Shown: positions 21,019-58,333 of the stretch, piece by piece
Layout: the number at the start of each line of letters is the position of its first letter
How positions within the stretch are numbered: the stretch's first letter is position 1
NCBI RefSeq assembly: GCF_021869535.1
Contig: NW_026262712.1
Location: 11,780,001-11,844,000, forward strand
Length of the DNA: 64,000 bases
Reading direction: 5' to 3'
Source: Mytilus californianus
Lineage: Eukaryota
Notes under the pieces: generated by a model
Seen by the model: only the letters and a program-made list of their open reading frames with translations
What the model was told of the DNA's origin: nothing
Database searches by the model: none
Program-made: the position numbers and the translations under genes

Positions 21019-22788
21019 GCTACTTAGGCTCGTATGCTATGAATGACCTTCATCTTGCACGTGGGATTTTAGATCAATGAAGATTCAGAAAACATCTTTT
21101 CAAATATAATGTTAAAATAAAAAACAAATAATGTTTTTATATGCATATTTTATTTTTCTATTTTTTAATTTATAATTTTGATAGGACAAAAAAATTAGAT
21201 ATTATATTAAGTAGTATATATAGACATTAAAGAAGTAAGAAAGAAGGACAATAGGTCGAGATTGTGGCTGTTTATTCATTATTAATGGTGAATATGCATG
21301 ATATAAAACAACAACAAAAAAACAATTTATAAAATCTGGCAAATGTTATAACCAAAAACAAATCCTTCAATCGTAACTCTTCACTTGAATTACATAAAAA
21401 AAATCCATCATTAACACTGTATAAGCAACATAAATATATTCATTTTCAAGCATCATTCAAACATCACTTAAATAATAAATTTATCTTTTTAACATTGTAT
21501 AATCGATCCATATATGATCTCTAATCCCAGTAGATATAAAAAAATAATCTTAGTATGTTAACAATATAAATGGGAAGACGTGATGACAATGAGACAACAA
21601 TCCAACAAATTCCTAGTGGAGTTCATTTAATAGTTGTAATAAGCAATTCTAATAGAACAAATAAATTTGTTGTTCTCTCAATACATTCTTCGAATGATGT
21701 AAACTTTCTCTTTATACCATACATGATTGCACCATAACATTATCTTTCCCCAAACAGCATGCACTATACACCGTTCCCCCTTCCGTTTCCTATTTCAATC
21801 ATTCGCAATTCCCAACATTAAAATCATTTATCATAATGTAAAGTTTATGAGAGAATCCAAAGTTTAGTAGAATAAATATAATATAATATAAAATTAAAAA
21901 AATGCAATATTCAACATGCACTATACGCTATTCCCAATGGAACATACACAATACATCATGACACTATGGTACCATAAACATCCTTTTTAAGTTTACATCT
22001 GTATTTCTGGAATATTTACCAAAACATTTGCTTCAGTATTAAAATTTCTTTTCCGTTTAACAGCAAACCTATATACGAAATGGAATGCCTAGTTGTTTGA
22101 TGTTCAACGAATATTTTTTTTCCTTTTCCTTTATTAAAAAAAAAATTATTAATAACTTAAAATATGTTATTTTTTCCAGGAGTGTTTCAATAACTAGAGT
22201 GCCAATTCATCTCAACATGGAGTTCGATATTGTTCTTCATATATTGAATGGGTTAAATGGATAAAAGTTAAGATAATGATGTGTATCTGTTTCTTGTAAT
22301 AGATATCTGATTATACCTTTATTGCAAATACTTTCACCAAAATATATAACAAACAGTTCACTTTTATTTACTCCCTTGGTAATTGGAGGCATGGGACGAT
22401 GAAGCTAAAATATTTTCCAAATATTCACGTTGAATTACTTGAAATTAAGATTATTTTTTTTCCATTTCGTCGTGCATCGTCAGTTTGCATATGATTGAGT
22501 CTCCAGTGTTCCCATTGCAGATCTCTGAAATTGACAATATTGTTCAATCAAAACAAAACATATTTTCTGTATGTTAATGATTCTAGTATGAATCTAACTT
22601 TAAATCTAATAAACTAATGATTTGCGAATGTATGCATAAATCCTCGTAGCATCAAAACCGATAAAAAAAAATATCTCCCTAAATATCAATTGACACGATA
22701 TTTTATCTGTATTCATTTTAGTTCGTAATGTTTAGTTTCGTGTGTATATAACTGTATATCCTACAACTCATTTATTATAGACACTATG

Positions 22789-25700
22789 TCATGGTGACCC
22801 CTTTTGACCAATTTCACAAGCCAATAAAAGAGGGTACTCACAACCAATGTCACATGCAGTATAATCTGCGCCTGTGTCTACCAACATTCTTACTATCTGT
22901 GCACGATTCATTCTAAAAGCCATCATTACAGGTGTATTTCCATAAATATCACATTTATTGTAATCTGATCCTATTTCCAGCAACATCCTGACTATTTCTG
23001 TATGTCCATATCTACTAGCCATTAATAAAGATGACTGACCCCAGATGTCACATTTATTATAATCTGATCCGTTTTCTAACAACATCCTTACTAATTGTAT
23101 ATGTCCATATAAACAGGACATCAGCAAAAGTGATTGATCCCGACTCTCACATTTATTATAGTCGCCTTCTATGTCTATTAACATCTTAAGTATTTCTTTT
23201 TTGCCATATTCACAAGCTGTCATGACAGGTGACTTATCAATATTGTTACGCTTAGTTACATCTGCTCCAATTTCTAACAAAAATCTTACTATTTCTTTGT
23301 GTCCAAAGCAACAACTAATCATAACAGATGAATTTCCATCATTGTCACATTTATTATAATCTGCTCCTTTGTCTATCAAAATCCTTACTATTTTTGTGTG
23401 TCCATATCTACAAGCCATCATCAGAGGTGATTGTCCATTATTGTCACATTCATCAAAATCTGCACCTTTGTCTAACAACATTCTAACTATTTCTGTATGA
23501 CCGAATATAGCAGCATTCATGATAGGGGACTGACCTAAATTGTTACATTTCCTATAACCTACTCCTTTGTCTATCAACATTTTAACTATTGTTATATGTC
23601 CATTTCTACAAGCCATCATCACAGGTGATTGACCCCAACTCCCACATTTATTAAAATCTCCTCCTCTATCCAAAAGCATCCTGGCTATGTCTGACTGACC
23701 TTTTTCACATGCAATCATTATAGACGACTGATCCCACTTTATACATTTATTGCAATCTGCTCCTTTGTCTAGTAATATTTTCACTATTTCTGCATGACCA
23801 TACCCCGAAGCCTTCATTAAAATAGAATTTCCCATATTATCACATTTATTACAATCTACTCCCTTTTCACACAACATCTTCACTATTTCATTTTGTCCAT
23901 ACATACTAGCTAACATAACTGATGACTGGCCATATATGTCACACTTATCATAATATGTATCTTTGTTTAACAACATTCGTACTATTTCTGTATGACCAAG
24001 TCCAGCAGCAATCATTACAGGTGACTGACCAAATTTGTCACATTTATTATAATCTGATCCTTTTTTAACAGCATTCTTACTAGTTCTGTATGACCACCTC
24101 TACAACTCATCATCACATGTGACTCACCAGTACTGCACCATTTGTTAAAATCATCTCCGTTGTCTATCAACATCCGTACTATTTCTGCATGCCCATGTCC
24201 AGTAGCAGCCATTAAAGGTGAATTCCCGAGATTGTCACATTTATCATAATCTGCTCCTTTTTCTAACAACTTCCTCACTATATCTGTATAACCACATGTA
24301 GAGGCCATCATTAGAGGTGATTGACCATAATTATTACATCGCTTAACGTCGACACCAAAATTGCAACACCATTTAAACAATGCAATATCTCCTATAAAAC
24401 AACAATGTTGCATGACAGTGTCAAATGCAACACCCATATAAACATCACTCATAGTCCATAATGTTTTATCCTCACAAGTATGCGCTAGTTGCTTCTGGTA
24501 AGATTTATCCAATGTTTTCAAATAATATAGGAGTTTCTGTCTAAACTGATGTATCGTGATATTGATATTTTTAAATACAACTTGTAATTTTCACTTTGAC
24601 CAGTCTTCAGTTATTCTCTGTATGTACATTTCATGATACTCGGTAGGCACAATAGTAATTAAATGATCTATGTCGTCTTTTCTTTCGAATAAAAATCGTG
24701 TCTTGATCAAATGACTGTCAGCATTCTGGATTAAGCAATGGATTATTTTTTGTCCAAAGTAGTAAACAAGAAATTCAAATATTTTAATGAAATTAGTACC
24801 GTTTATGTTATAATCATCTGTTGTTCTATAAAAGCTCAAAACAATATTTTCTGTATTATTGGTATAACATGGGTCAGTTACTTTCGATAAAAATATATTC
24901 AAGAGTGAATCAAACGCTTCCTTTAAAATAAGTCGTGATGTCCCTCTGTCCAATTTACATGCCTTGCAAGTGTTCTCAATAATGGTTTTTGTTTCTTCGT
25001 TAAACTCTTTAGTCAATATTTCTTCATACACCTTGTTATTGAATACAACACATAATGCCAACGCACAGTATTTAGATTTATTATTTTCTACAATTTTGTC
25101 TATTAACATCATTACTATTTCTGTATAACCTTGTTTGCATGCAATAAATAAAGGTTTTTTATGATGTAAACTATCATATTTATCATAGTCTGCACCTTCC
25201 TGTAACAACATTCTAACTATTTCTTTATAACCTCTAATACAAGCAATCAAAACTGGTGACTCACCAACCGTGTTACAATTATCATAATCTGCTCCTTTGT
25301 CTATCAATATTCGTGCTATTTCTGTATGACCATGTTTACAAGCCATAATTAAAGGTGACCTTCCATAAGATCCACATTGATTAATATCAATATCATGATT
25401 ACAACACTACTTGACCATTTGAATGTCTCCAATCGAACAACAATGTATCATGACAGTGTCACAAATATCTATTTTATTCCAACTCTTCCTAGCTTTATTT
25501 TCATCAATATCACATGTATTTACTAGTTTGTGCTGGTAACATAGATCAAATGTATTAAGATAATAAAGGAATTTCAGTCTGAACTGCCTTATCTTCATGT
25601 TTATGTTATTAAAAACATCTTGTAACTTCCCCTTTGACCAGTCATCAATAATTCTCTGCATGTATAGTTGATGATACTTGGTTGGCACAAAAGTAAATAA

Positions 25701-26769
25701 CTGATCTATGCTATCTTTCCTGTTTAACAAAAATCTTTCACGGATCAAACGGCTTTGTGCATTTTTAATCAAGCAATAAATAATTTTCTGTCCAAAAAGT
25801 GAGCTAGAATGTCGAAAAGTTTGTCATGTATAGTAGTATAGAAGTTTTGTGTTCCTGTTGTGAGTGTATTGTTTTCTGTCGTTTCATTCACTTTTTCCTC
25901 CTTCTTTAAGAATGTAAATAAAAGCGAATCAAGTTCATCTTTTAAAATAAGTCTTGATGTTCCTCTGTCAAGTTTACAAGCTTCACAAGTGTTCTCAATT
26001 ATGCTTCTTGTTTCTTCATCAATCTCTTCCGTAAATATTTCTTCATTCACTTTGTTATCGAAAACGATACATAAAGCTAAGGCACAGTATTTACCCAAAA
26101 ATCCCTTCGTTTGTAGCTGTTCAACCTGTTCTTCATAAACCGAAAAAGGATTCTGGAAAAAATATTTAATATCAACCGCCGGGTTTTCATGATATAATTT
26201 ACACAAGAGTGGGAAACAATCATAAAGATCATAAAAATTTGTAATTTGAGAGGCTTTTTCATCAAGATAAAGCTCGGCAATCGATTGCTTTTCAGCTTTT
26301 GATAAGCACATATTTTCTGACAACAAATTACACACACATGACGTAAAAACTGATAATGTTTCAAATTTTTCATCTTGGTACACTTGTAATCTACATGCTA
26401 CAATTATCTTTATTTTTTTATTATCAAGAAGGTCTTTAATACGCTCAATAACGGGTTCCCAAATTTTTAGATCAGACAGGTTTAAAGAAAAATTTCCACA
26501 TAAATCATCAATTACAAACAATGTCTTCTTATTTGGATTGTGAAACTGGACAATGTCCCCTGGATCTGTTACTAAAAGTATGTCGAATCCATCTACACCC
26601 ATTTGTAAAGCAACATGTTGGAGAGTTACCGTTTTCCCAACACCGGAACTAGCCGTTATAGTAACACAGCTGTTCTCTTTTAAATACTTCAGTACTTGAG
26701 TTGCAGCTCTTGTGTTAACAAACATCTGATCTCTCTCCTTCCATTTTCCCAGTATTTTGTTAATCTGAG
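22789..26769 (-). pseudogene. Exon 4 of HEPN-STAND-ankyrin gene: nSTAND3-like NTPase, helical region, 3 ANK, second helical region, ~15 ANK
   Basis: Acceptor TTTCAG| at 26770 (phase 1). Walker A ASSGVGKT (26630-53), Walker B LFVIDD (~26505-26522), 33-aa ankyrin repeats. Five ORFs join through -1 shifts in homopolymers (25794-98, 24061-66) and in-frame stops (25407-09, 24591-93). Confidence 0.9.
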
Positions 26770-27986
26770 CTGAAATATAAACCAATCCTTTTACTACAAA
26801 CACGTTTTTTATGCTGTATTTTGAACCATGCAATAAAATATGCTATATAACACTGATTTAAAGCATTTCCAAGTTTCTCAGTTGTCTTCATTAGGAACTA
26901 CTTCTTAAAATATTTTCTCGTCCTACTACTTGTGTATTAAAAGCATTATTTAAAAAGGTTTAAATATTAATGCATCTAAAATATCTAAATCGTGAACACG
27001 GTGACAAAGTAAAAAGTTAATGATAATGAATTTAGAACGTTATATACAGTTCATGTACATAGTTACATATTAGAAATCTCAAACGTATTTCCAATTCTTT
27101 CATGGATAACATTTCAAACTTTTATCCTAATGTTCCTTTGAAATAATTTACCATTATAATCTGACCTCAAAGCCTCAGAACGCTTTAAAAATTCGTAACT
27201 ATTTAGAACTTGATGTATCATGTCATACTGTATGGAAACCCACCTATCTCATTGAGGTTTATCTAACATCTCATTTTACAAGTAAAAAAAAATATTTAGC
27301 CGTCACAACTTGTCTATGTTTTATAACTGAAATTATAAATTTTAACCTCACATATTCCAGCGTTTCATAATAACGCACAACCTTCCAGGTACCAACATCT
27401 AACATGTCGAGTTAAAATTAGCCCGCCTTTCAAATTCCCACATTCTTAGTTAACCTCTGAGATTTCAATGGAACAGTCATATATCCTCAAGTTAAAGAAC
27501 TCATTTCAACAATAGACACTTACTTTTAGTTTTAACCTTCAAGATCCTATCTTATTAATCTGACTTTAGCATCTCTCATGTTCTGAACATAATAGTTACT
27601 TTACAGGGCTTGGTTTTCACATATTAAGCTTTGAACGTTCCTAATGAAAGTAAATCCAGAAAAGCACCCCAATTTTGACATGTTTACCTATTATAACTGT
27701 TTGTTTTGCTCACACATTGTTGTCAACATAATGGAGTTCAATTCGACTGTCATACAAGTGAGAGGTTAAGCAAGCTATGAAACCACGCTTAATCCACCAT
27801 CTTTTACATAAGGAAATGTATGTTCCAAGTTAGGAATATGATGTGAATTACCTTTTGGTTTAGCCATTTGGGAAAGGACTTTCTGTTTAGAATTTTCCTT
27901 GGAGTTCGATATTTTTGTAATTTTACTTTGACGGACGCATGGGTTGTTTTCATTTTTTTTACAAGTTTGATATTCAAACTGTTTAC

Positions 27987-28138
27987 CTCTAACATTCCAT
28001 TTAACTGTATCCTCCGTCAAACTTTTCAATGACTCTTTCAATGCTTTTATTTCATCATCACACCGTATGATTTCTTTGCTTGTTTTTCAGCTGATCGCAT
28101 TCGTCTTTCATTGTACATCCTCCTAATCTATCAATGGC
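27987..28138 (-). pseudogene. Exon 3 of HEPN-STAND-ankyrin gene (AIDRLGGCTMKDECDQLK…/EIIRCDDEIKALKESLKSLTEDTVKWNVR), helical linker, frameshifted
   Basis: TTTCAG|GCC acceptor (phase 0) and AGAG|GTAAAC donor (phase 1) match the flanking exons; 152 nt is not 3n+1, so it contains a frameshift. Confidence 0.8.
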
Positions 28139-30292
28139 CTGAAATGAAATAATGGGGACTGGGAAATATGATTTTTTTTTATTAAAATTCGCATTTTAGC
28201 AAAAAGTATTATTGTAAATAAATAATATAATGTGACAGTTATATAAAGTTTTTAAGCAGATATATCCATTCTTCCATCTTCACAATAACTATTGAAAGAA
28301 TCTCAAGGAACCATTCCATCGGGTGAATAATATTGCCAAATTGTACTCATAAATAGTAGTGACCTTAAAGGGTACACATCGTCCTTGATTTCCGCTTTGG
28401 ACCACACAGATCTCTATATTCCCTTCACTTGAAACTAGAACAATCAGCACAATCCTCTGGCATTATACCTAAATATAACCAACAGTTTGCCTACCATTCA
28501 TGTCCCAACCATGTTCAAACAAGTAAGACAACCGGCGGATCAACAAAATTGTGAGAAACTCAAAAAGAAAATTGATAGCACCTTTACAGTTCGGAGTTCA
28601 AGACAAACGTTGTCGAGCAACACGCAGTAAGCTCCTCATTGTGCCAATACATTAGACCTCAGCTTTAGTAGAAACTTGGAAAAAACGGGAACATATTTTC
28701 TCATTTATGAGTATAAATCTTGATAAAAAAACACGCAAAACTCGCTCCTTTGTTGAACAGAAATAAAGTGTATTAACCGATATTCGTGTCTATCACCCTA
28801 AAACGAAACGATTTGATCAGATTGTGTTCAATTCGTACGCCAAATGAATGAGGTCTCACTAAGCTGTTTTCGGCAAAGCCTTTTGGATTTTGGTTTGTCC
28901 TCAATGATCCTCAACTTTATACTGTATTTGGCTTTTTACTTTTTTGTTTATTTAAGCGTCATTGATAGGTATTTTGTTGATATGATCATTATCATAAATT
29001 AACATTGAATTATTTAACATAAATAGAATTTCTATTCTCGTATGGTTGTGGCCTGTTATCTATTTCTTGCATGAATAGATATTTCTTGTATCACACTGCA
29101 TGGAGTGTGATACGAAAAAGTTATTCGAATATCTGTGTTAATCTGATTGGCTTACCCAGCATCATAAGACGATACTACAGCATTCCTATTGGCTATTCGT
29201 TAGGTCATTAATGACTTTCAAAGGTTACGACGATGTACATTTCGTCCATGGCAACGGACATATGTGTTTTCATCAATAAATATACAAAATACTCACACTC
29301 ACTCACACCAGACTATCTTCTTTCTTACCAATTTTATTACATTCTGAAGCGTACAAAAAGTCTTAAAATGTCTGATATTAAAGTTTTACACCGGAAAAGG
29401 ACATATGACGTCATACTGGAATGTGCAAAAGACTTGATCAACGATTCGCGGTATTTTTAATTAAACACAACAAGAGTGTTGATCATAAGAGAAATAGGTT
29501 GAACAACTTGTGATAATGAGATATTGCTTGATATCAGCTCTCATTATTTAATTTAAATATATTGAAATTAAATAACTCCAGTTGATATCAAGCGATATCC
29601 CATTCTCACTTGTTATGAAACCTATAATTCCCCAAATATATTACCTTTGATGTTTTTGACCAAACCTTTCTGAATTCTGTGTCCCAAATGTTCTTCAACT
29701 TTGTTTTTCATTGAATCTTTTTACCAGTTTTTTTATTCCATAGTCACTGATAAGTCTTTTGTAGACAAAACTCGAGTCTGATGATGAGTTTATTCCCTTA
29801 ACAGTGTCCTACTAACAGACCCAACATATTCAATGATCTCTTGTTAAAATTCTTACGTTTAACACATGTTTCACTCTTAAGAAAAGACCATAAAAATTAT
29901 TCAAGTTTTCTACGGTATAAAGACAACAATTTTAACGAGAACAGTGTCGAGTACTGAAAAAGAATTCATGTTTTTAAACAAAGTGCGATACCTGCCGTCA
30001 TGAAAAGTTTTGTAGTCACGTAACAAACTGTATGACAAAAAACTGCTATGTCTACAACGGTCTTACGTCATGCACAACAAAAGAGGAAGTATTCAAACTT
30101 ATGATGACACCCAAAAAGCATTAGCCAGCCTTTCTGCAAAAGATTACCATCTATTTTTTTTTAGCTTGATCAATTCATAACTCATCCAAAATTCCAATTA
30201 ATTTTTATTTTGTTTATTCTTCGCTATCATGTGTAGTGTCATACATATGTACAAATCTACTGACCAAAACGAACTCAAAGCAGTAACTTGAA

Positions 30293-31286
30293 AAGTCTAA
30301 ATTGAAAACAACGTTCAAACCTATGATTGCGTTGGAGAAAAACCGCAATTTTTATACGTGTGCATGCAAAACAAATTTCTTGTTAGAGGGGCCTAAATAC
30401 AGCACTAAGATAAGATAAGATCAAAAAAGTGAAAAAGTATATTTAAACAAAACGCATTTGATTAACAGGTCGAACAACGGATATTCTTAAACCATGCTGA
30501 CTGCCAATGGTGTTTGCCAAATAAACGGATCACAAGATGTAACAAAATGGATCTTTATTATTAATTTAATACCAAACAGAAAAAAACCAATACACTTGCG
30601 GAAAAGATGGTATACCGCAAACATGAGGTGCACAAATTGGTACACCTTATCCGGATTTCGACAATTAATGTCTCTTCAGTGATGTTAGGAATCGAAACGG
30701 TATTTGGAAGGACATATAATTTACCTCAATTTAGGATATACTCTTGAAATTTGAAGAGTCGAAATAGGATGAACGGATTATATAAACCAGAAGGCAAATA
30801 GAATACAAGCCCAAACGAAAAAATATAAACAAGTCTAAATTGAAAACAACGTTCAAACCTATGATTGTGTTGGATAAAAACCGCAATTTTTATTCGTGTG
30901 CCTGCAAAACAAATGTCTTGGTAGAGGGGTCTAAATACAGCACAAACAACATTTTTCAAAAGACCAAAAATTTGAAAAAGTATATTTTACCAAAACGCAT
31001 CTGACTAGCACGTCGAACAACGGATGTTCTTAAACACTGCTGACTGCCATGGCGATTGCCAAATAAACGGATCATCAGATGTAACAAAATGGATCTTAAA
31101 TGATAAATTAAAACCAAACAGAAAACAATAAATTTGCGGAAAAGATGGCATACCGCAAACATGAAGTGCACAAATTGGTACATCATATCCGGATTTCAAC
31201 AATGAACGTCTTTTCAGTGATGTTAGGAATCGAAACGGTATTTGGAAGGCCATATAATTTACCTCAATTTAGAATAGACTCTTGAA
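30293..31286 (+). repeat. Two diverged tandem copies of a 456-bp repeat (period 538)
   Basis: 30293-30748 aligns with 30831-31286. Confidence 0.9.
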
Positions 31287-34200
31287 TATAAAAAATATAA
31301 ATGTAGTGTACAAATAATAGTGAATCCACAGTAGATCATCACAGAGAGTGAAAAAAGATACGATTGATTAGATCTGTATGAATCTGGATTGTTGGAGGGA
31401 ACGCTTGATCTCCCCCATAATTCAGATGTGTGACATGACGCAAACTTTCAAGAAAAACCGAGTGTTAAATCATGTATGATTTGGCGGAGGACTGTCTTAA
31501 ACCTCCTCCTCAGTTAACTATCGTTGGAGTGGTTTCCTATGAACCATCGGCAATTATTTCACTTCAACCCGTTGTAGATAAGCTTGACAAATGTAAATAC
31601 ATTTGTCAAATGATAAGTGCTGTACATATTGAATATTCGAATGTACAAAACTCATACTGCATAGTAAGCTATAAAGGTGTAATACCACCAAATATTAGTA
31701 CGTCACATCCGGTTGCATTTGACAGTTGTAGGAAATCAATCCTACATTTCGTTGCAGTAAAAAAATTCTGAGTCGTTAACAAATATCTTGGGTGATTCAC
31801 AGCACCATTCTATTTTTATTTGGTGTTTCTATAGAAAATTGTGAAAACTTCAGGTTACATGGTTACTAAAGCTTGTACACAGCATAACACATTTGATTGT
31901 TTAACTTCCAGTGATGGTTATTATCTTATGCAATGAAATATTGTATAAAATTGTGTTTGTAGTACTGGACAGGATAAAACTTTACTCATGTCAAGTATTT
32001 CTTTACTTGAAACAAAGATAAATTCTGCACATTTTTTTGAAAAGTGCAGATTTAGCAAAGACTAGTACAGTAAGAGAAAAACAATGGTGGTATTACACCT
32101 ATTAAAGGTCTCTTAATAATAATGTAAAAAAAAATCAGACGAGAAAACTAACAGCCTGGTTTTTGTACAATACAATAAAAACAAATATGATATACAGCAA
32201 CGAACAGCACCACTTAAGAACAGTCACCTGATTTGGGATAGGCACATACAAAATATGGGAAGGGTTAAACATGTTTGCGGGCGCGATCCCCCTAACCTTG
32301 TACAGTGGTTTAACAGCACAACAGAAGAACAAACTATTAAAATTAGCTGAAAAGGGATTAACTCATAAAATCGATATAAAGTTCAAGAGCAACTAACAAA
32401 AACTTAATGACGGAAACGCCATACGTTATGTTTCTTAGACTAAAGTAGTATCAATAATAAAAGTAAGATAAAAAATATCGAACTCCAAGGAAAATAAAAA
32501 AAAACAAACGGAAAGTCTTTTCTCAAATGGCGAAACAAGAATACGTGTCCATAAGACATCGTCCCCCCTCATAGTATCACATTTCCATGTTCATTGAAAA
32601 AGGGTCATATTCTAATTTGGTATATCATTTTTTATATCTTTAATGTGGTGAAGAACGGATGAACGGACGAATACACACACCAGAAAATATAACATTCCTC
32701 TCATAGAATAAGTTGGAAATAAAAGTAAAAGGGTCCTACTGAACAAAACTGCAATGAAATATTTGTCTAATTAAAACGTCAAACATTTCATAAAAACAAT
32801 TTGTAAACAATGACGTTACATAATACACACAGACTCTTCTTTGAACCCATGCATCATCATAATTAGAAACAAGAAATAAAATATCCCCTGATTTGTTAAA
32901 GTATAATAATTTGTTTCTTGAAGATGCATTATCATAAACACATTTTTATAAAATTCTACGAAAAGATGACAAAGTACTATCTGGTAAATGCATTGATGAT
33001 CTAATTTTTTGCGTCTTAAAAAAGTGTCTTGAAATTAGTTATAGAAATATAAAAAAAGAAACAAGTCGACTATACATTTTACTTATGGATCTGTTTGAAA
33101 CGCCTGGTCTAACATTATGATTCATAAATCACAAAATGAATTAGAATATCATCTCGCTTAGAACTCATTTTTAAAACCTTAATCTCCCTTTTGAGAAGAA
33201 CTAGATATATGGGTGAAATAAAAAGCCCATTAATGAAGGTGCATTTGATTTTACGTATCTAGATTAATTATTCCCTAAAAAGGTTTTGTCAATAAAATAA
33301 TCCTGTATTTAATTACAAAATATGAAAAGCTTTAAAAAAAAAGTAGATTGGGTTAATTTTAAAATTGATTCGATTCCAAAAAAATATGTGTACTCAACGA
33401 ACAAACTATTTATTCAGTTTATGCATCCTTCCGTCATGCTTCAATGCAATAAGCCGAGATAGGTTTAGACATGTTGGTTATGTCTAGTAATATCATTTTA
33501 TTGGAAATCTCTATAAGAAGAGGAAATACATGTAACACTGGTGCCTTTTTCAAGGAATATACAATTGTGCAATATATATATATATATCAAAAACGACAGT
33601 TCAAATACATATTTCTTTATCATGTATTTAGTGATAAATGTATATATTTTTTTGAAATTGCATACTTAGTATGTTCAATAAAACTCTTCGTTATTTATAT
33701 ATGACTGTACTATTGATATTTTAGATTAGCCTCGGAAACACGTAATACAATTTAAAGCGACAGCCATGTTTAAAAGTTTGGGATCATCAGTTCTGTTTTT
33801 GTTTTCATTTTAAGGATAACTACTGCATACACATTCAATGATACGGTACAATTTAGGATTTTTTAATTGAAAGTTTGGTGATTTTACCTTTACGCTTAAT
33901 TTTAGTCACAAGAGTTATATAAAAATAAGCAGATGTGGTATGAATGCCAATGAGACAACTATCCACCAAAGTTTTAATGAAATTGATGTAAGCAATCATA
34001 GGCAACCGTACGGCCTTCAGCAATGAGAAAACCCCATATCGTCTGGTCGGCTATAGAAATGTGAAACAATTCAATTGAGAAAACATAACGGCATAATTTA
34101 TAACAAAACAATTTACGAAAAACCACTATGTCAGACATGCACCACTGAACTACATGCTCCTGACTTAGGACAAGTACATAAAGAATGTGGCAGGTTTAAT

Positions 34201-35211
34201 CATGTTTGTGAGCGCCCAACCCTTCCCTAACATGGGACAGTAGTGTAACAGTACAACATATGAACAAACTATAAAAATCAGTTGAAAAAGGCTTAGGCGC
34301 CTCTGGCCTTTGTTAGTCTTGTATGATTTTAGTTTCAGTTCATTTATATGTTTTGGAGTTTAGTATGACTTCAAATATTCCCTGAACTATAACACATATT
34401 TGTTTAAGTGCCAGCTCAAGCCCCGACTCCGGGTACGGGATTTTCTCGCTGTGTTTTGGTGGCCTTCAGCTGTTTTCTGCTCCTTGGTCGGCGTGTTGTC
34501 TCTTTGACACATTCCCCATTTCCATTCTCAATTTTATTGACCCATCAGATGGATTCAAATAGAAATACATCTAACAAAAACAGTGTGGACGTGGACGGGT
34601 ACTTATTCATCCCAAAAAACAAAAAGACACTAAGAACAGATCAGAGAGTGCTTGCAGTTGCTGACAGCTAGTTCAAAGCAAATAACAACTAATGAAATCA
34701 GTCATGCATCTAAGACTAAATTACCAATTAGTACACATCCAACATCCAATGGATTAAATGTGTAAAGACGTTATTAACAATCAGAGGAAACACGACCTTG
34801 TGCGATGCAAAACTATAGGTATCGACAGATTGTAGTACCGTGAAAGCATATATGTGTAATGTTTAGTATGGGATTCTTCTTTAAACATATTAAAGTTCTG
34901 TTAGGTGTTCTATAAATAAACGTATTCTGAAAGGTTACCGATTCAACACTGTAATACAGTCTTTGAATATGATGATGTTAAGATGCAATATACACACTGA
35001 ATTGTGACACGTGTGAGAGGATTCTTGGATGTTCGATTGTATTAACGGCTATGTTATTGGACATAACTTTTCAAGTGAAGCCCAATGAATACATGCCGGG
35101 TTTGATGGGTGTGGACTCCGTGATTTAAGAGAATGTTTTTGTTTTAAGCATGAACAAGTTCTCGACTGACGGACGTAAGACGGTCCTTAAAGAAAATGAA
35201 ACTTTACATAC

Positions 35212-35441
35212 ACCAGTTATATCAGTTCAGGCAGTACTGAAGAATGTTGTGTCTATTTTACTATCATCCAAATGAGCCAAGTAGTTCCTGTAATACTTTA
35301 TTCTTGCCAAATCAGCACCTGGTGTGGTCTCCGTAGCTGCTGGTAATTTTTCATACCCAGCATTAGGAGCCATCATTGGAGTCAGATTTCTAAGTAAAGT
35401 TATCATCAAAGTGAGGTCAAATGTTTTTGAATCAGGAACAC
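35212..35441 (-). pseudogene. Exon 2 of HEPN-STAND-ankyrin gene: DZIP3-type HEPN core (VPDSKTFDLTLMITLLRNL…DLARIKYYRNYLAH…TA*TDITG)
   Basis: TTTCAG| acceptor (phase 1), GTATGT donor (phase 0), HEPN RxxxxH motif RNYLAH at 35272-89, in-frame TGA at 35227-29 where Trp is expected. Confidence 0.85.
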
Positions 35442-36156
35442 CTGAAAATTTAAAAATATGTAATGAAAGATAATGCTATGTGTTCGTATGCATTAAAGAC
35501 CGTTGTTAGATTGTTCAGAAGAGGTTTTATAGATTTTCCTTTAACATCAAAATGATTTACCAAGCCATTGCGTTGTTAGTTTATTTGCGACTTATGGGAT
35601 TGAATGTCATTTTGGTATCCTTCGTCTCTCTTTATGTAACTGTTATATACTGAATGCTATAGTCGAAATATTGGCGGTTTTTAACGCAGCATAAAGCAAT
35701 GGTCAATCAACCAATCAGTGCAAAAACAACGCTTTTAGAATACATACATATAAGACGCTTGTGACCAAAAGCCAAACATATAATCTTATGTATAATAAAA
35801 ACAAAATAGGAAGTCTGCCTATCTGTAAATGTGTTAGCAATTCATGAATCCGTTAGTGTTTTATTTTATGTGTTCAATTAAGAGATTTAACTCAACGTTA
35901 TACTGCTGGGTCTTCCAAGTGCTAATGTTTTAACGCTCGGACGAAAGAAGTCCAGAGATGACTTATGTATACAAAAAAATATTAACAAAAATACCGAACT
36001 CCAAGGTAAACTCGTAAAGGGGATGTTCGTAAAAAGGCATTTTCCGAAGCAAATTGCGGGTTTACCCTGATTGTATAGCTAGCTAAATTACCACCTGTAT
36101 GACAGATGTTTAAATAACGTTACATTGACAAAAATAACAAGAATCTGTAAACTTAC

Positions 36157-36362
36157 CAGGAGTTCTCGGATGAAGGAGATTCCACTGGAATGGGTTTATT
36201 ATCTTTTTTATCTTAAGTTCACTTAGTGTTTTGAACTCTTGCTTTATTGAGGCACCAAGGCATGATGGGACAAATTCACGATCAATCAATGCTCTTACTC
36301 CACGTGGAGAAATCCCAGTAAGTAGCAAGCTCATCCTCACATAATTTGTACCCGTCACTAAC
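36157..36362 (-). pseudogene. Exon 1 (or first recognisable exon) of HEPN-STAND-ankyrin gene (NYVRMSLLLTGISPRGVRALIDREF…QWNLLHP)
   Basis: Typical DZIP3-HEPN N-terminal helix; donor G|GTAAGT at 36156 (phase 1) matches exon 2; 5' boundary uncertain. Confidence 0.8.
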
Positions 36363-53950: not shown

Positions 53951-54209
53951 ATATTACTTTTACTGGTTAGTCTGTTTTTTTAGATATCCATTTGACGTGA
54001 CTCTGTGCTTATGTATCCCGTCATACTTTGAACGACAAAATTATTTTATTTATTAATATTACTTTTACTGTTAAGTCTGTTTTTTGTGATATACATTTGA
54101 CGTGACTCTGTACTTATGTATCCCGTCATATTTTGAACCACACAATTATTTTATTTATTAATATTACTTTTACTGTTAAGTCTGTTTTTTGTGATATCCA
54201 TTTTACGTG
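53950..54209 (+). repeat. 105-bp tandem repeat (2.5 units); the third unit resumes at 58332-58370 after the Gypsy insertion
   Basis: Unit starts at 53950, 54055, 54160. Confidence 0.9.
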
Positions 54210-57200
54210 CGCCAGGTAGTTTCATATTCCGGAAACGGTTTTCCGATGTGTGTTTGACATTTAACATAAACTCCCTGTCTTCCTGTTTTACGATAATATA
54301 ACTTGGCATTTTACTGTGTTAGTCAATAAATAGACAATATCTCAAGTCGTACATTTGTGTAGTGATTTTCCTTATTGGCGTGGTTGCAGCGAGATTACGT
54401 CCCACGTTCTTCGTACAAATGTGTGTAAGTCATTCCGTAATAAAAACATAACTGTGAACGCAAGTGAACGACAACCTAAATATTATCCTAAACATGGCTA
54501 GTTCCACCCGGGCACCGAAGCAGTGGTGCTTAACAAAGATTGAAACTGTGAACACTTTTGAAAACTGGCGCCAGATCCTTGTATATACATTATCTTTAGA
54601 CAAAAACTTTGCTCCTTTTCTTGTGTCTGGAACCAAATGGGAAAAGAAAACAAAAACAACAACTCACATGGGGTTTGCAAATGATGGGGAAGAAGTCCCA
54701 GAAGCCTACAGAAAAACCCGAGAGCAAAAAGTTAGCATGCTTGAGCTTATGTTAGGACAGATTGCCAACTACTGCCCAATAATTTCTAGGAACACCATTG
54801 TCAAAAACTCCACATCGATCGACAGCATTTGGCAAACCATCCGCCTCCACTATCGTTTTCAGATTACTGGTGCGCATTTTGTTGACTTTGATGCTATTCA
54901 CTATGATCCAGGTGAGAGACCTGAAAATTTGTACCAACGGTTAATGGCCTTTATTGAAGACAGTCTGCTAAGAAAAGATATGGGTATAACTCACCACGAT
55001 GAAGACATAGAGGACGACGAGGAACTATCACCTACATTAGAAAACCTCTTAATATTGACATGGCTTCGTCTCATCCACCCTGAGCTACCTAAACATATAA
55101 AACAGAGATATGGTACAGAGCTTCGTGCGAGAACACTAGCATCTATAAAACAAGAAATAGCACAAGCTCTAGAATCACTTCTAGAAGAGTTACGTACAAC
55201 AGAGGATGCCAAATCCATGAGAGCAGCCGTCAAGTGCTTTCCAAAGACAAAACAATCTTCGTTTGTGCCCCGCTCAAACTTCAAATCATGCCCACTGTGC
55301 AAATCAGCAGGACGACCAGACCGTCATTTTCTTTGTCAATGCACATACTTACCACAACAAGATCGACAATTTATGGATAAAGCTCGTGCTGTATCTGAAA
55401 TTCATGATGTTGACGAATGCGATTCAGATAACCACGATAACACTGATTCAACCTTTCAAGACCAGTTCCCTGAAGTATCTAACAGAGTTCAGATTCAACA
55501 ATCACCTTATATTGACGTTTATTATGGCCACAATCCTACAAGACTTACCATTGACAGTGGTGATACTGGAAATATGATACGTGCCTCCGCCGCTACCAAA
55601 CTTAACGCAAAAATAACCAGCAGCTCACAGTCAGCCCATCAAGCAGATGGATCATCACCTCTTACCGTTGTGGGAGAAACTAGACTCACATTTACGAGAG
55701 ATAAACACCAATTGTATTTTGAGGGACTAGTAGTTGAGAACTTAGATTCTGACATATTAGCTGGTATCCCATTTATGGAGAAAAACGATACATCTATTCG
55801 TCCTGCACGCCGACAGGTACTTATAGGGAATGATTGTGTTTATAAGTATGGTTCATCCGCTAATGGAACTTCTAATTGCGCTGTGCGTAGAGCACATGTG
55901 GCACGAGCACCATCTGACGCCACAACTTTATGACCAGGAGACTACATAGATGTAAAAATACCTACAGACATGGTTTCAACTGATGACATATTTTTCATCG
56001 AACCTCACAAAAATGAAAATCTCAATTCTTGGCCTGAACCCAGTCTAGTTTCTAGCGTTGCAGGAAACCTACGAATACCTAACCTCACTGATGAACCTCT
56101 CGTTTTCAAACGTAATGAACATTTCTGCAATGAACGTTCTAAATATTCACCGGAGAATAATGAAATTAAAAGCCCGGATCATGCAGTTGCTACTAAATCT
56201 CAACTCAATAAGGCTCAAGTACTACATTCCGATCTTGTACGAGTTGACCCTGATGGTCTATTACAACCATGTATTAAGGAAAAATTTAAATCTTTACTTA
56301 GACAGTACGACAATGTTTTCAGTCCAACGTTTAAAGGCTACAATGGAGCAGTTGGAGCTCTAGAAACAAAAGTTAACATGGGACCAGTTCAACCACCACA
56401 AATAAAGGAACGGATACCTCAATATTCAAAAACCTCAACCCTCATTAATGCCAGACGTAGATTCTACACTACGACAAATTGCTCAGTGGAAACATATTGT
56501 GATTTCTGATTTGACTAAAGATTTTTATCAAATTCCGTTACATAGGGACTCGATGAAGTACTGTGGTGTCTCATCCCCATTCTGTGGTGTAAGAGTATAT
56601 GTGAGGTCTGCAATGGGGATGCCTGGATCTAAGACAGCATTAGAGGAACTTACTTGCCGTGTACTAGGCCACCTAGTACAAGAAGGAGTCGTAGCGAAAA
56701 TTGCCGACGATCTATATTGCGGCGGCAATTCACCAGAAGAACTTCTTACTAACTGGGAAAGAGTGTTACAAGCCTTACAGAAGTGTAGCCTTAATTTATC
56801 AGCTACAAAAACAATCATTGCACCTAAACAAGCTACAATTCTCGGCTGGATTTGGGAACTCGGATCAATCCGTGCAAGCCCTCACCGCATTGCTACACTT
56901 TCTAACTGTCAGCCTCCAAAGATCGTACGTGCACTTAGATCATTTGTTGGTGCCTACAAAGTGTTGTCTCGTGTAATTAAGAACTCTTCTGGACTTCTGT
57001 CACTACTTGAAAACGCAGTAGCTGGATCTGAGTCAAAAGACACAATATTATGGACTGAAGCTTAACTCAGCCTTTACTAGTGCACAAAACGCACTTTCTA
57101 CTAATCGTTCGATTGCTCTCCCTCGTCCAAACGACCAACTCTGGATTGTTTCAGACGGAGCTTTAAAAACATGCGGACTTGGAGCTACGTTGTACATAAA

Positions 57201-58333
57201 CAGAAACGACAAACTTCTTCTTGCGGGATTCTTCAGTGCGAAACTTAGACAAACTCTTCGCCAGTGGTTACCATGTGAAATTGAGGCCTTATCAATTGCG
57301 GCTTCTATCAAACATTTTAGTTCGTACATTATTCAATCTTTATCTACAGCATTTGTTCTAACTGATAGTAAACCGTGTGTTCAAGCCTTTGAAAAGTTAT
57401 GTAGAGGTTGATTTTCATCAAGCTCTCGGGCTTCTACTTTTCTGTCGACTGCAAATCGCTTCCAAGTATCTATCAGACATGTTTCTGGATTAGCAATACT
57501 ACCATCTGACTATTCAAGCCGTACAGCACCCAATTGTGACAATCCCGCCTGTCAAATTTACAATTTTATACATCTTCAGGAGGAATGCGTTGTGCGTCAC
57601 GTAACAACTGCAGATATTCTAAACGGAACAGTAAAGCTTCCCTTTACAAGCAGGGCAGCATGGCTTTCAAACCAGAATGAAATGCAATTTGAAAACGTTC
57701 AACTACTACCGCATTCCGATGATGACGACGATGAAAGAGTGAACGACAGCTCCTCACCTCAATCTGTGCCGGTAATTCCTAAAGCTATATCCGACCTTCC
57801 AACATTTCCGTCAGTAATACCGCATCAAATTACTCAATTAGAAAATGTTGAACATCCGCTTAGTACAAAGAGTCCGGACATGAATTTAAGTAACGATAAT
57901 TTTGAAATGGACACACCAGAGGAAACATATATTGACTCTCAAGAAAATGAAAAAAATTTCTCATCATCCGAATTAATAAGTCGACCGGATCGCAAGCGCT
58001 CACTTCCAAAGAAATTCAATGACTATGTTATGTACTGAGTGAGTGTAATGGAGAAATTCCTAAATGTATATAGAACAGTTCATTTTTATTTTTGTTTTTA
58101 ATTATTGTATTAAAGGGGCAGAATAATCCCGAACACCAGAAGGCAATCTACTCTGTGAAGGTGGTTATAATTGTGTAACAAAAAAGAGAAAAAAAGCGAT
58201 AACGCCAGGTAGTTTCATATTCCGGAAACGGTTTTCCGATGTGTGTTAGACATTAAACATAAACTCCCTCTCTTCCTGTTTTAAGATAGTATAACTTGGC
58301 ATTTTACTGTGTTAGTCAATAAATAGACAATAT
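54210..58333 (+). mobile_element. Ty3/Gypsy LTR retrotransposon copy, internally deleted, with truncated terminal repeats
   Basis: 131-bp direct repeats at 54210-54340 and 58203-58333 (5 mismatches) enclose gag-protease-RT-RNase H. Confidence 0.9.
54494..58038 (+). pseudogene. gag-pol pseudogene: Gag with CCHC knuckle, aspartic protease, RT, RNase H; integrase not seen
   Basis: [18 protein letters not shown]; LTIDSGDTG; [19 protein letters not shown]; IVSDGA, EIEAL, LTDSKP. In-frame stops at 55931 and 57409, frameshifts at ~56425 and ~57060. Confidence 0.88.

Follow-up and report, generated by a model that had tools for sequence, protein, structure and literature searches.

A predicted four-exon HEPN-nSTAND3-ankyrin gene of a mussel, probably NLR-like and disabled in the assembled haplotype

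Do the coding segments scattered between positions 36358 and 22789 of a mussel contig belong to a single receptor gene and, if so, is that gene dead? The question is raised by a 64,000-nucleotide stretch of Mytilus californianus DNA (contig NW_026262712.1, positions 11,780,001 to 11,844,000 of the forward strand; hereafter the window, to which all coordinates refer), in which a first-pass annotation made from the sequence alone had described a HEPN domain, a STAND NTPase and ankyrin repeats on the minus strand. The window consists of animal DNA that is rich in A and T (overall GC content about 0.32), and its close protein matches all come from Mytilus species. Our reading, to which we give a probability of roughly 0.8, is that the segments form one four-exon, NLR-like gene of a HEPN, nSTAND3 and ankyrin family expanded in mussels, disabled in the assembled haplotype, and that this haplotype carries a young or segregating null allele, or is in part the product of homopolymer assembly error, rather than an ancient relic.

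Gene structure and relatives

The gene is unannotated, and its predicted product would consist of a DZIP3-type HEPN domain, a short helical linker, an nSTAND3 P-loop NTPase and ankyrin repeats, in this order. Its parts are as follows.

36358-36157, minus strand: exon 1, N-terminal half of the DZIP3-type HEPN domain, ending at a GT donor (tblastn, residues 6-73 of P0005 and P0008)
35441-35212, minus strand: exon 2, C-terminal half of the HEPN domain, containing RNYLAH, with AG/GT borders (Pfam HEPN_DZIP3)
28138-27987, minus strand: exon 3, helical/coiled-coil linker with the end ..DTVKWNVR (tblastn matches to P0008, P0010 and P0016 in two frames)
26769-22789, minus strand: exon 4, STAND, winged-helix/helical modules and ankyrin blocks, beginning at an AG acceptor
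26769-26264, minus strand: nSTAND3 nucleotide-binding domain at the start of exon 4 (Pfam nSTAND3, E 6.2e-25)
26093-25410, minus strand: winged-helix and helical module, copy 1, ending at the TAG 25409-25407 (frame reading and sequence context)
25367-25089, minus strand: ankyrin block 1, two full repeats and a third truncated at the junction with module copy 2 (custom ankyrin hidden Markov model, HMM; Pfam Ank_2, E 2e-23)
25074-24330, minus strand: winged-helix and helical module, copy 2, joined in frame and containing the TGA 24593-24591 (blastn self-match)
24329-22792, minus strand: ankyrin block 2, 15 full repeats and a C-terminal cap (custom ankyrin HMM; Pfam Ank_2, E 1e-94)
22791-22760, minus strand: terminal stop TGA at 22791-22789, then AATAAA (sequence reading)

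The pieces of the gene between breaks were searched separately, with X placed at the breaks in the scripts. Five Mytilus proteins that carry both HEPN and nSTAND3 (P0005, P0006, P0008, P0010 and P0016) align collinearly across all four exons in tblastn, homologue residues 6-73 falling on exon 1, 74-149 on exon 2, 150 to about 240 on exon 3 and about 239 onward on exon 4. Since Pfam gave no match on exon 1 alone, this exon was identified by its alignment to homologues, at the start MASLS..EEENYVRMSLLLTGISPR (relatives begin MASLS..EEENYVRM). The linker in exon 3 is shorter than in most of the aligned relatives, and its length is variable across the family. Outside 22.8-36.4 kb, tblastn found no second paralogue in the window.

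Most of the structure proposed by the first-pass annotation is borne out. GT/AG borders are present at all four of the minus-strand exons it had given, and the claim of a single spliced gene with an effector-STAND-repeat layout agrees both with the collinear Mytilus proteins and with the gene models of two relatives that share the same borders. At the P0006 locus of M. californianus, the exon borders match, four coding exons extend over 25 kb and the first HEPN exon has an ATG; at the P0097 locus of M. coruscus, the second HEPN exon is 231 nt long and a single giant last exon starts directly after ..PWNIR. The proposed phases 1, 0, 1 do fit, but only if a frameshift in exon 3 (listed below) is crossed. 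Pfam matches all three of the expected profiles (DZIP3-like HEPN, nSTAND3 and Ank), hmmsearch with the custom ankyrin HMM counts 17-18 full repeats plus partial caps where about 18 had been claimed, and the three sequence motifs lie intact at the positions assigned to them, RNYLAH at 35289-35272 in exon 2, the Walker A motif GVGKT at 26644-26630 and the Walker B motif LFVIDD at 26521-26504.

A search of representative proteins with the STAND piece returned 972 relatives at E <= 0.001. We fetched 223 relatives and classified them with custom HMMs, many of them being clearly partial gene models. The classes are HEPN-STAND-ANK (30), HEPN-STAND (37), STAND-ANK (74) and STAND only (82), and Pfam confirms the full HEPN-STAND-ANK set in P0096, P0097, P0100, P0105 and P0106. 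The Mytilus models P0097, P0105 and P0106 resemble the window gene in domain order, giant last exon and linker border, and their STAND piece is 49-63% identical to that of the window gene. They are paralogues, not orthologues, and no protein above about 72% identity to the window gene was found.

It could be argued that two separate genes, a HEPN-only gene made of exons 1-3 and a STAND-ankyrin gene made of exon 4, have been wrongly joined, and the 74 of the 223 database models that are STAND-ANK without HEPN, together with others that have no ankyrin part, speak for such a division. However, the annotated models of P0006 in M. californianus and P0097 in M. coruscus have this four-exon chain with identical borders, the exon phases fit, and 67 relatives carry HEPN and STAND in one protein. 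We consider a wrong joining of two genes extremely unlikely.

Two further observations concern the gene models of the relatives. The P0006 model (L002 31509-31512, M. californianus) stops at a TGA after 551 residues and is without the ankyrin part; judged from such sequences, truncated or decaying members seem to be common in the HEPN-nSTAND3 family. P0112 has a neurotransmitter-gated ion-channel ligand-binding domain ahead of nSTAND3-ANK and is most likely a merged gene model.

It is also evident that part of exon 4 is present twice. The segment 26093-25203, which comprises the winged helix, the helical region and the first ankyrin repeats, is repeated at 25074-24165 with 69.7% DNA identity over 930 nt (blastn self-match). 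The two module copies are 55% identical in protein, and their divergence is about that between different paralogues. Contigs of set X9 have the same species label, differ by about 1% from the window and come from outside the runs flagged as a possible source of the assembly; two of them (contigs 18 and 19) are collinear across the doubled module, and the doubling is therefore real. The Mytilus models mentioned above are without it, and it was not convincingly found among the 223 fetched relatives. P0150, the sole relative with two copies of the helical module, is probably a merged gene model. The second copy may go back to an old duplication within the gene, or the two copies may derive from different paralogues joined in a chimera.

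Lesions, alleles and expression

The assembled haplotype is unable to encode the protein. It carries seven lesions, and we call the copy disabled because, compared with intact relatives, it is without an ATG, contains three in-frame stops and is frameshifted by 1 base at three sites. In exon 1, no in-frame ATG lies between the upstream stop and the HEPN domain. The other six lesions are the following.

35229-35227, minus strand: stop TGA in exon 2, replacing a tryptophan that is invariant in the family (alignment)
28087-28083, minus strand: +1 frameshift in exon 3, in an A-run (sequence reading; tblastn in two frames)
25793/25794, minus strand: -1 frameshift in exon 4, module copy 1, in an A/T run (frame reading)
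25409-25407, minus strand: stop TAG in exon 4 (frame reading)
24593-24591, minus strand: stop TGA in exon 4, module copy 2 (frame reading)
24060/24061, minus strand: -1 frameshift in exon 4, ankyrin block 2, in an A/T run (frame reading)

The mapping of reads and contigs for the comparison of alleles spanned 22500-28300 and included, beside the X9 contigs, those of set X1, which bear another species label. Both X9 and X1 have one extra base behind 25793 and another behind 24060, and each extra base brings the flanking segments of exon 4 into one frame. Both also read C for T at 25408, which turns the TAG into TGG, a tryptophan codon, as at the equivalent place of module copy 2. Three of the four exon 4 lesions (both frameshifts and the TAG) are thus absent from X9 and X1, which means that these three are either private to the assembled haplotype or errors in it, and that they are not fixed in the species. 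The first-pass annotation had remarked that this copy looks dead; this is correct for the assembled copy, but not for the contigs of other individuals at the three sites.

One explanation of these differences is that the animal has an intact, working gene and that the lesions are assembly errors. All three frameshifts lie in A/T runs that are 5-6 bases long, every 1-base indel that separates X9 from the window is in an A/T run and the window run is always the shorter, and X9 and X1 restore the frame at both exon 4 sites. The shorter runs fit homopolymer under-calling and natural slippage alike. Yet three of the lesions are stop-making substitutions, which are less likely than indels to be errors, and the ATG is missing, a combination atypical of homopolymer error; the shift in exon 3 adds a base instead of losing one; and the short-read contig sets X21-X23, a possible source of the assembly, contain all sampled exon 2 words. 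That every lesion is an error seems to us very unlikely.

The opposite explanation is an old pseudogene that is fixed and of which no working allele exists; the matches in RNA-like data would then be due to paralogues or to carried-over DNA. The seven lesions of this one copy, and its scrambled and doubled module, are in line with long decay, and there is no purifying signal between alleles: among the exon 4 differences listed, 24 are nonsynonymous and 9 synonymous, whereas 80% nonsynonymous changes are expected under neutrality (p = 0.18). This ratio fits relaxed constraint, and it also fits the diversifying pattern usual in immune receptors. Furthermore, among the true RNA raw reads of X12, searched over about 10 million records (some 6% of the run), 12 fitted in part and no splice joint appeared. 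These two results count against a young or segregating null allele, as does the restriction of the allele evidence to three of the seven lesions. On the other hand, two indels and one substitution in X9 and X1 land exactly on lesions and remove them, which is unexpected under independent decay. The small contig sets X1 and X2, of unrecorded library type, cover exon 4 at a depth of 2-5 and leave the adjoining intron uncovered, which suggests a low-level transcript, and exon 2 words are found with a share of 0.53 in X27, a run on record as RNA, and of 1.00 in X6. We regard an old fixed pseudogene as rather unlikely. Because X9 and X1 are free of lesions at three sites, we prefer a young or segregating null allele, or a partial assembly error.

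A bolder possibility is a functional presence/absence polymorphism, in which some haplotypes would be open and transcribed with a doubled sensor arm (winged-helix domain, helical region and three ankyrin repeats, followed by winged-helix domain, helical region and 15 ankyrin repeats) and the sequenced haplotype would be a fresh null. If true, this would be an NLR-like RNase receptor in birth-and-death turnover with an unusual two-arm sensor. We think this improbable.

The HEPN head, the STAND switch and a possible mechanism

Exon 2 alone matches HEPN_DZIP3 (PF18738) with E 2.2e-18 and 66.8 bits against a cut-off of 27, over profile positions 39-107. The conservation of RxxxxH and of the Walker motifs that the first-pass annotation had called for is found across the paralogues. 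All of 34 complete HEPN domains of relatives have the N of R-N-x3-H, and at least 90% retain R and H; counting all 67 HEPN hits, RNxxxH is present in 51, and most of the others are partial domains. In the NTPase, G44/K45 are invariant and D87/D88 nearly invariant across 73 relatives.

The NTPase belongs to a catalogued Pfam family, nSTAND3 (PF20720). An AlphaFold model of the window's own 332 residues, built with the 73 aligned relatives, has a predicted local distance difference test score (pLDDT) of 91 and is predicted to comprise P-loop, helical and winged-helix domains. In Foldseek, the model matches ORC/Cdc6, EfAvs5, Apaf-1, WRR4A, ZAR1, NRC2, Dark, NLRP3/7/14, NOD2, MalT, CED-4 and SAMD9, with E values from 1e-6 to 1e-4 and template modelling (TM) scores up to 0.52; the probability is 1.00 for Avs5, Apaf-1, ZAR1, Dark, NLRP3, NOD2 and CED-4. 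In Pfam, the NTPase matches only nSTAND3, nSTAND_NTPase5 and AAA_22, and neither NACHT (PF05729) nor NB-ARC matches at E <= 0.01. Pfam and the custom HMM found no leucine-rich repeats (LRRs), the repeats being ankyrin only. A canonical animal NLR, that is, NACHT with LRRs, is ruled out by the absent NACHT profile match and the absent LRRs.

The head of these proteins varies. Among 56 relatives with N-terminal extensions, 35 carry HEPN_DZIP3 and 6 carry CARD, and Pfam reads P0113 as CARD-nSTAND3-ANK, with CARD sitting where HEPN would sit on the same chassis. Because of these two kinds of head, the position appears, as far as domain composition tells, to be a swappable slot for effectors or adaptors, as in NLRs.

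STAND switch behaviour is known from Apaf-1, NLRs and Avs, and HEPN RNase behaviour from RNase L, Ire1, Csm6 and Cas13. By analogy with these, the ankyrin arm of intact members would bind a ligand or lose an inhibitor, and the STAND module would then exchange nucleotide and oligomerise. The N-terminal HEPN domains, carried on the coiled-coil linker, would be brought into dimers, and the paired R-N-x3-H sites would cut RNA, as in RNase L, Ire1, Csm6 and Cas13. We put forward this sequence from sensing through STAND oligomerisation and HEPN pairing to RNA cleavage tentatively, at somewhat less than even odds.

Several results temper this reading. The histidine is lost in a few relatives, such as P0106 (RNYFAY) and P0057 (RNYLAQ). 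The HEPN model made from the close homologue P0068 is all helical with a pLDDT of 95, and Foldseek found no PDB match for it at E <= 0.001. Its top VIA match is the HEPN domain of Csm6 (Z 8.0, root-mean-square deviation 3.1, 111 aligned), and about ten other HEPN proteins follow at Z 5-7, intermixed with unrelated helical bundles (matches in this range include Csm6, Roquin, AbiF, AF_0298, Cas13, sacsin, LsoA, RnlA and a HEPN toxin); helical models often give VIA Z values of 8 or less, which places the HEPN fold match in the grey zone for helical bundles. The structural matches are thus consistent with HEPN and no proof alone, and the HEPN assignment is based on the profile match and the motif, not on the fold search. 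In addition, our literature search found neither a bench demonstration of RNase activity for any DZIP3-type HEPN nor a bench test of the receptor family, and the first-pass annotation knew of no functional characterisation either.

Another possibility is that the HEPN head is not a nuclease and serves as an RNA-binding or protein-docking adaptor, the receptor signalling by recruitment as with CARD. In 6 of the 56 relatives this place is taken by CARD, which is an adaptor, and the swap supports a non-catalytic head as well as it supports the RNase mechanism. DZIP3/hRUL138, from which the family takes its name, is an RNA-binding ubiquitin ligase. The members without the H of R-N-x3-H and the absence of an RNase assay from the literature searched would also suit an adaptor. 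However, almost all complete domains retain R-N-x3-H, including the asparagine that is typical of active HEPN RNases, although their overall identity is about 40-75%, and Rx4-6H is kept in 194 of 202 pearl oyster domains (PMC9646362). A purely adaptor role is in our view unlikely.

Known systems and remaining features of the window

The idea of an NLR-like receptor headed by a HEPN RNase has been published before. Anantharaman 2013 (Table 1; PMC3710099) tabulated animal proteins in which DZIP3-HEPN is fused to NACHT, ankyrin and CARD, including an expansion in oyster. Takeuchi 2022 described more than 50 pearl oyster NACHT proteins with an N-terminal DZIP3-type HEPN and proposed NLR-like sensing combined with RNA degradation (PMC9646362). 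HEPN fusion is the commonest non-LRR combination among cnidarian NLRs (PMC8260672) and has been described in corals (PMC10236652). The first-pass annotation had inferred a family of sensor-activated RNases; since such receptors were catalogued in 2013 and have been discussed in the three later papers, the window gene is a further member and the idea itself is not new.

The closest systems are those of bivalves and cnidarians, in which a DZIP3/hRUL138-like HEPN is combined with NACHT/STAND. They share with the window gene the same N-terminal HEPN family, a STAND NTPase and C-terminal repeats, their Rx4H is conserved, they have undergone large lineage-specific expansions, and a putative NLR-like RNase role has been proposed for them. 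They have NACHT and LRR, TPR or WD40, whereas the window gene has nSTAND3 and ankyrin, and the window copy also differs in being disabled and in its doubled winged-helix/helical/ankyrin module. Bacterial Avs proteins, such as the SIR2-STAND protein EfAvs5 (PDB 9jap), resemble the window gene in having an enzymatic effector at the N-terminus, then a STAND switch and, at the C-terminus, a sensor, and the NTPase fold of EfAvs5 matches the STAND model (E 5e-6, TM 0.49). Their effector (SIR2 or other nucleases), sensor type and kingdom are different, and STAND is the only link between the sequence families.

RNase L and Ire1, with a KEN-type HEPN, and Csm6 and Cas13 have an Rx4-6H HEPN RNase that is activated by dimerisation or higher-order assembly. 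RNase L shares an ankyrin sensor arm with the window gene, and the HEPN of Csm6 is the best structural match (Z 8.0, see above). None of the four has a STAND NTPase; their switch is a pseudokinase, CARF or crRNA, and they belong to other HEPN families. SAMD9 and SAMD9L use a nuclease effector in antiviral defence. They contain an animal STAND-type NTPase (PDB 9zjz) whose fold matches the STAND model with E 8e-5, but their effector is not HEPN, and their domain set and sensor differ from those of the window gene.

The HEPN-STAND-ankyrin family, which has expanded in sessile marine invertebrates, can plausibly be seen as an animal counterpart of the logic of bacterial Avs and RNase L, with a STAND switch arming an RNase. 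Because it is broken, the window copy adds little on mechanism; it points to fast allelic turnover of such mussel genes and displays an odd doubled sensor module. Intact paralogues would be useful material for the question of RNase activity and oligomerisation.

Some other features lie in the introns. In intron 3, the X9 allele has +AAA at 26906 and +A at 27283 relative to the window and lacks 27 bases at 27067; these indels are ordinary allelic variation, which is about 1% between individuals. In the 7-kb intron 2, two minus-strand open reading frame fragments at 30487-30645 and 30956-31186 have near-identical starts (MYQFVHLMFAVYHLFRK.. and MMYQFVHFMFAVCHLFRK..) and are probably two copies of a dispersed element. 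Intron 3 also contains one high-copy sequence.

27544-27931, no strand assigned: high-copy dispersed repeat in intron 3 (X9 word depth 129,000-157,000, against about 55 in the flanks)

Given this word depth, the repeat exists in thousands of copies. It is not tRNA-like according to ARAGORN and is also abundant in RNA-like contig sets. Elsewhere in the window, the GC content of positions 54000-58000 is 0.40, compared with 0.31-0.34 in the remainder.

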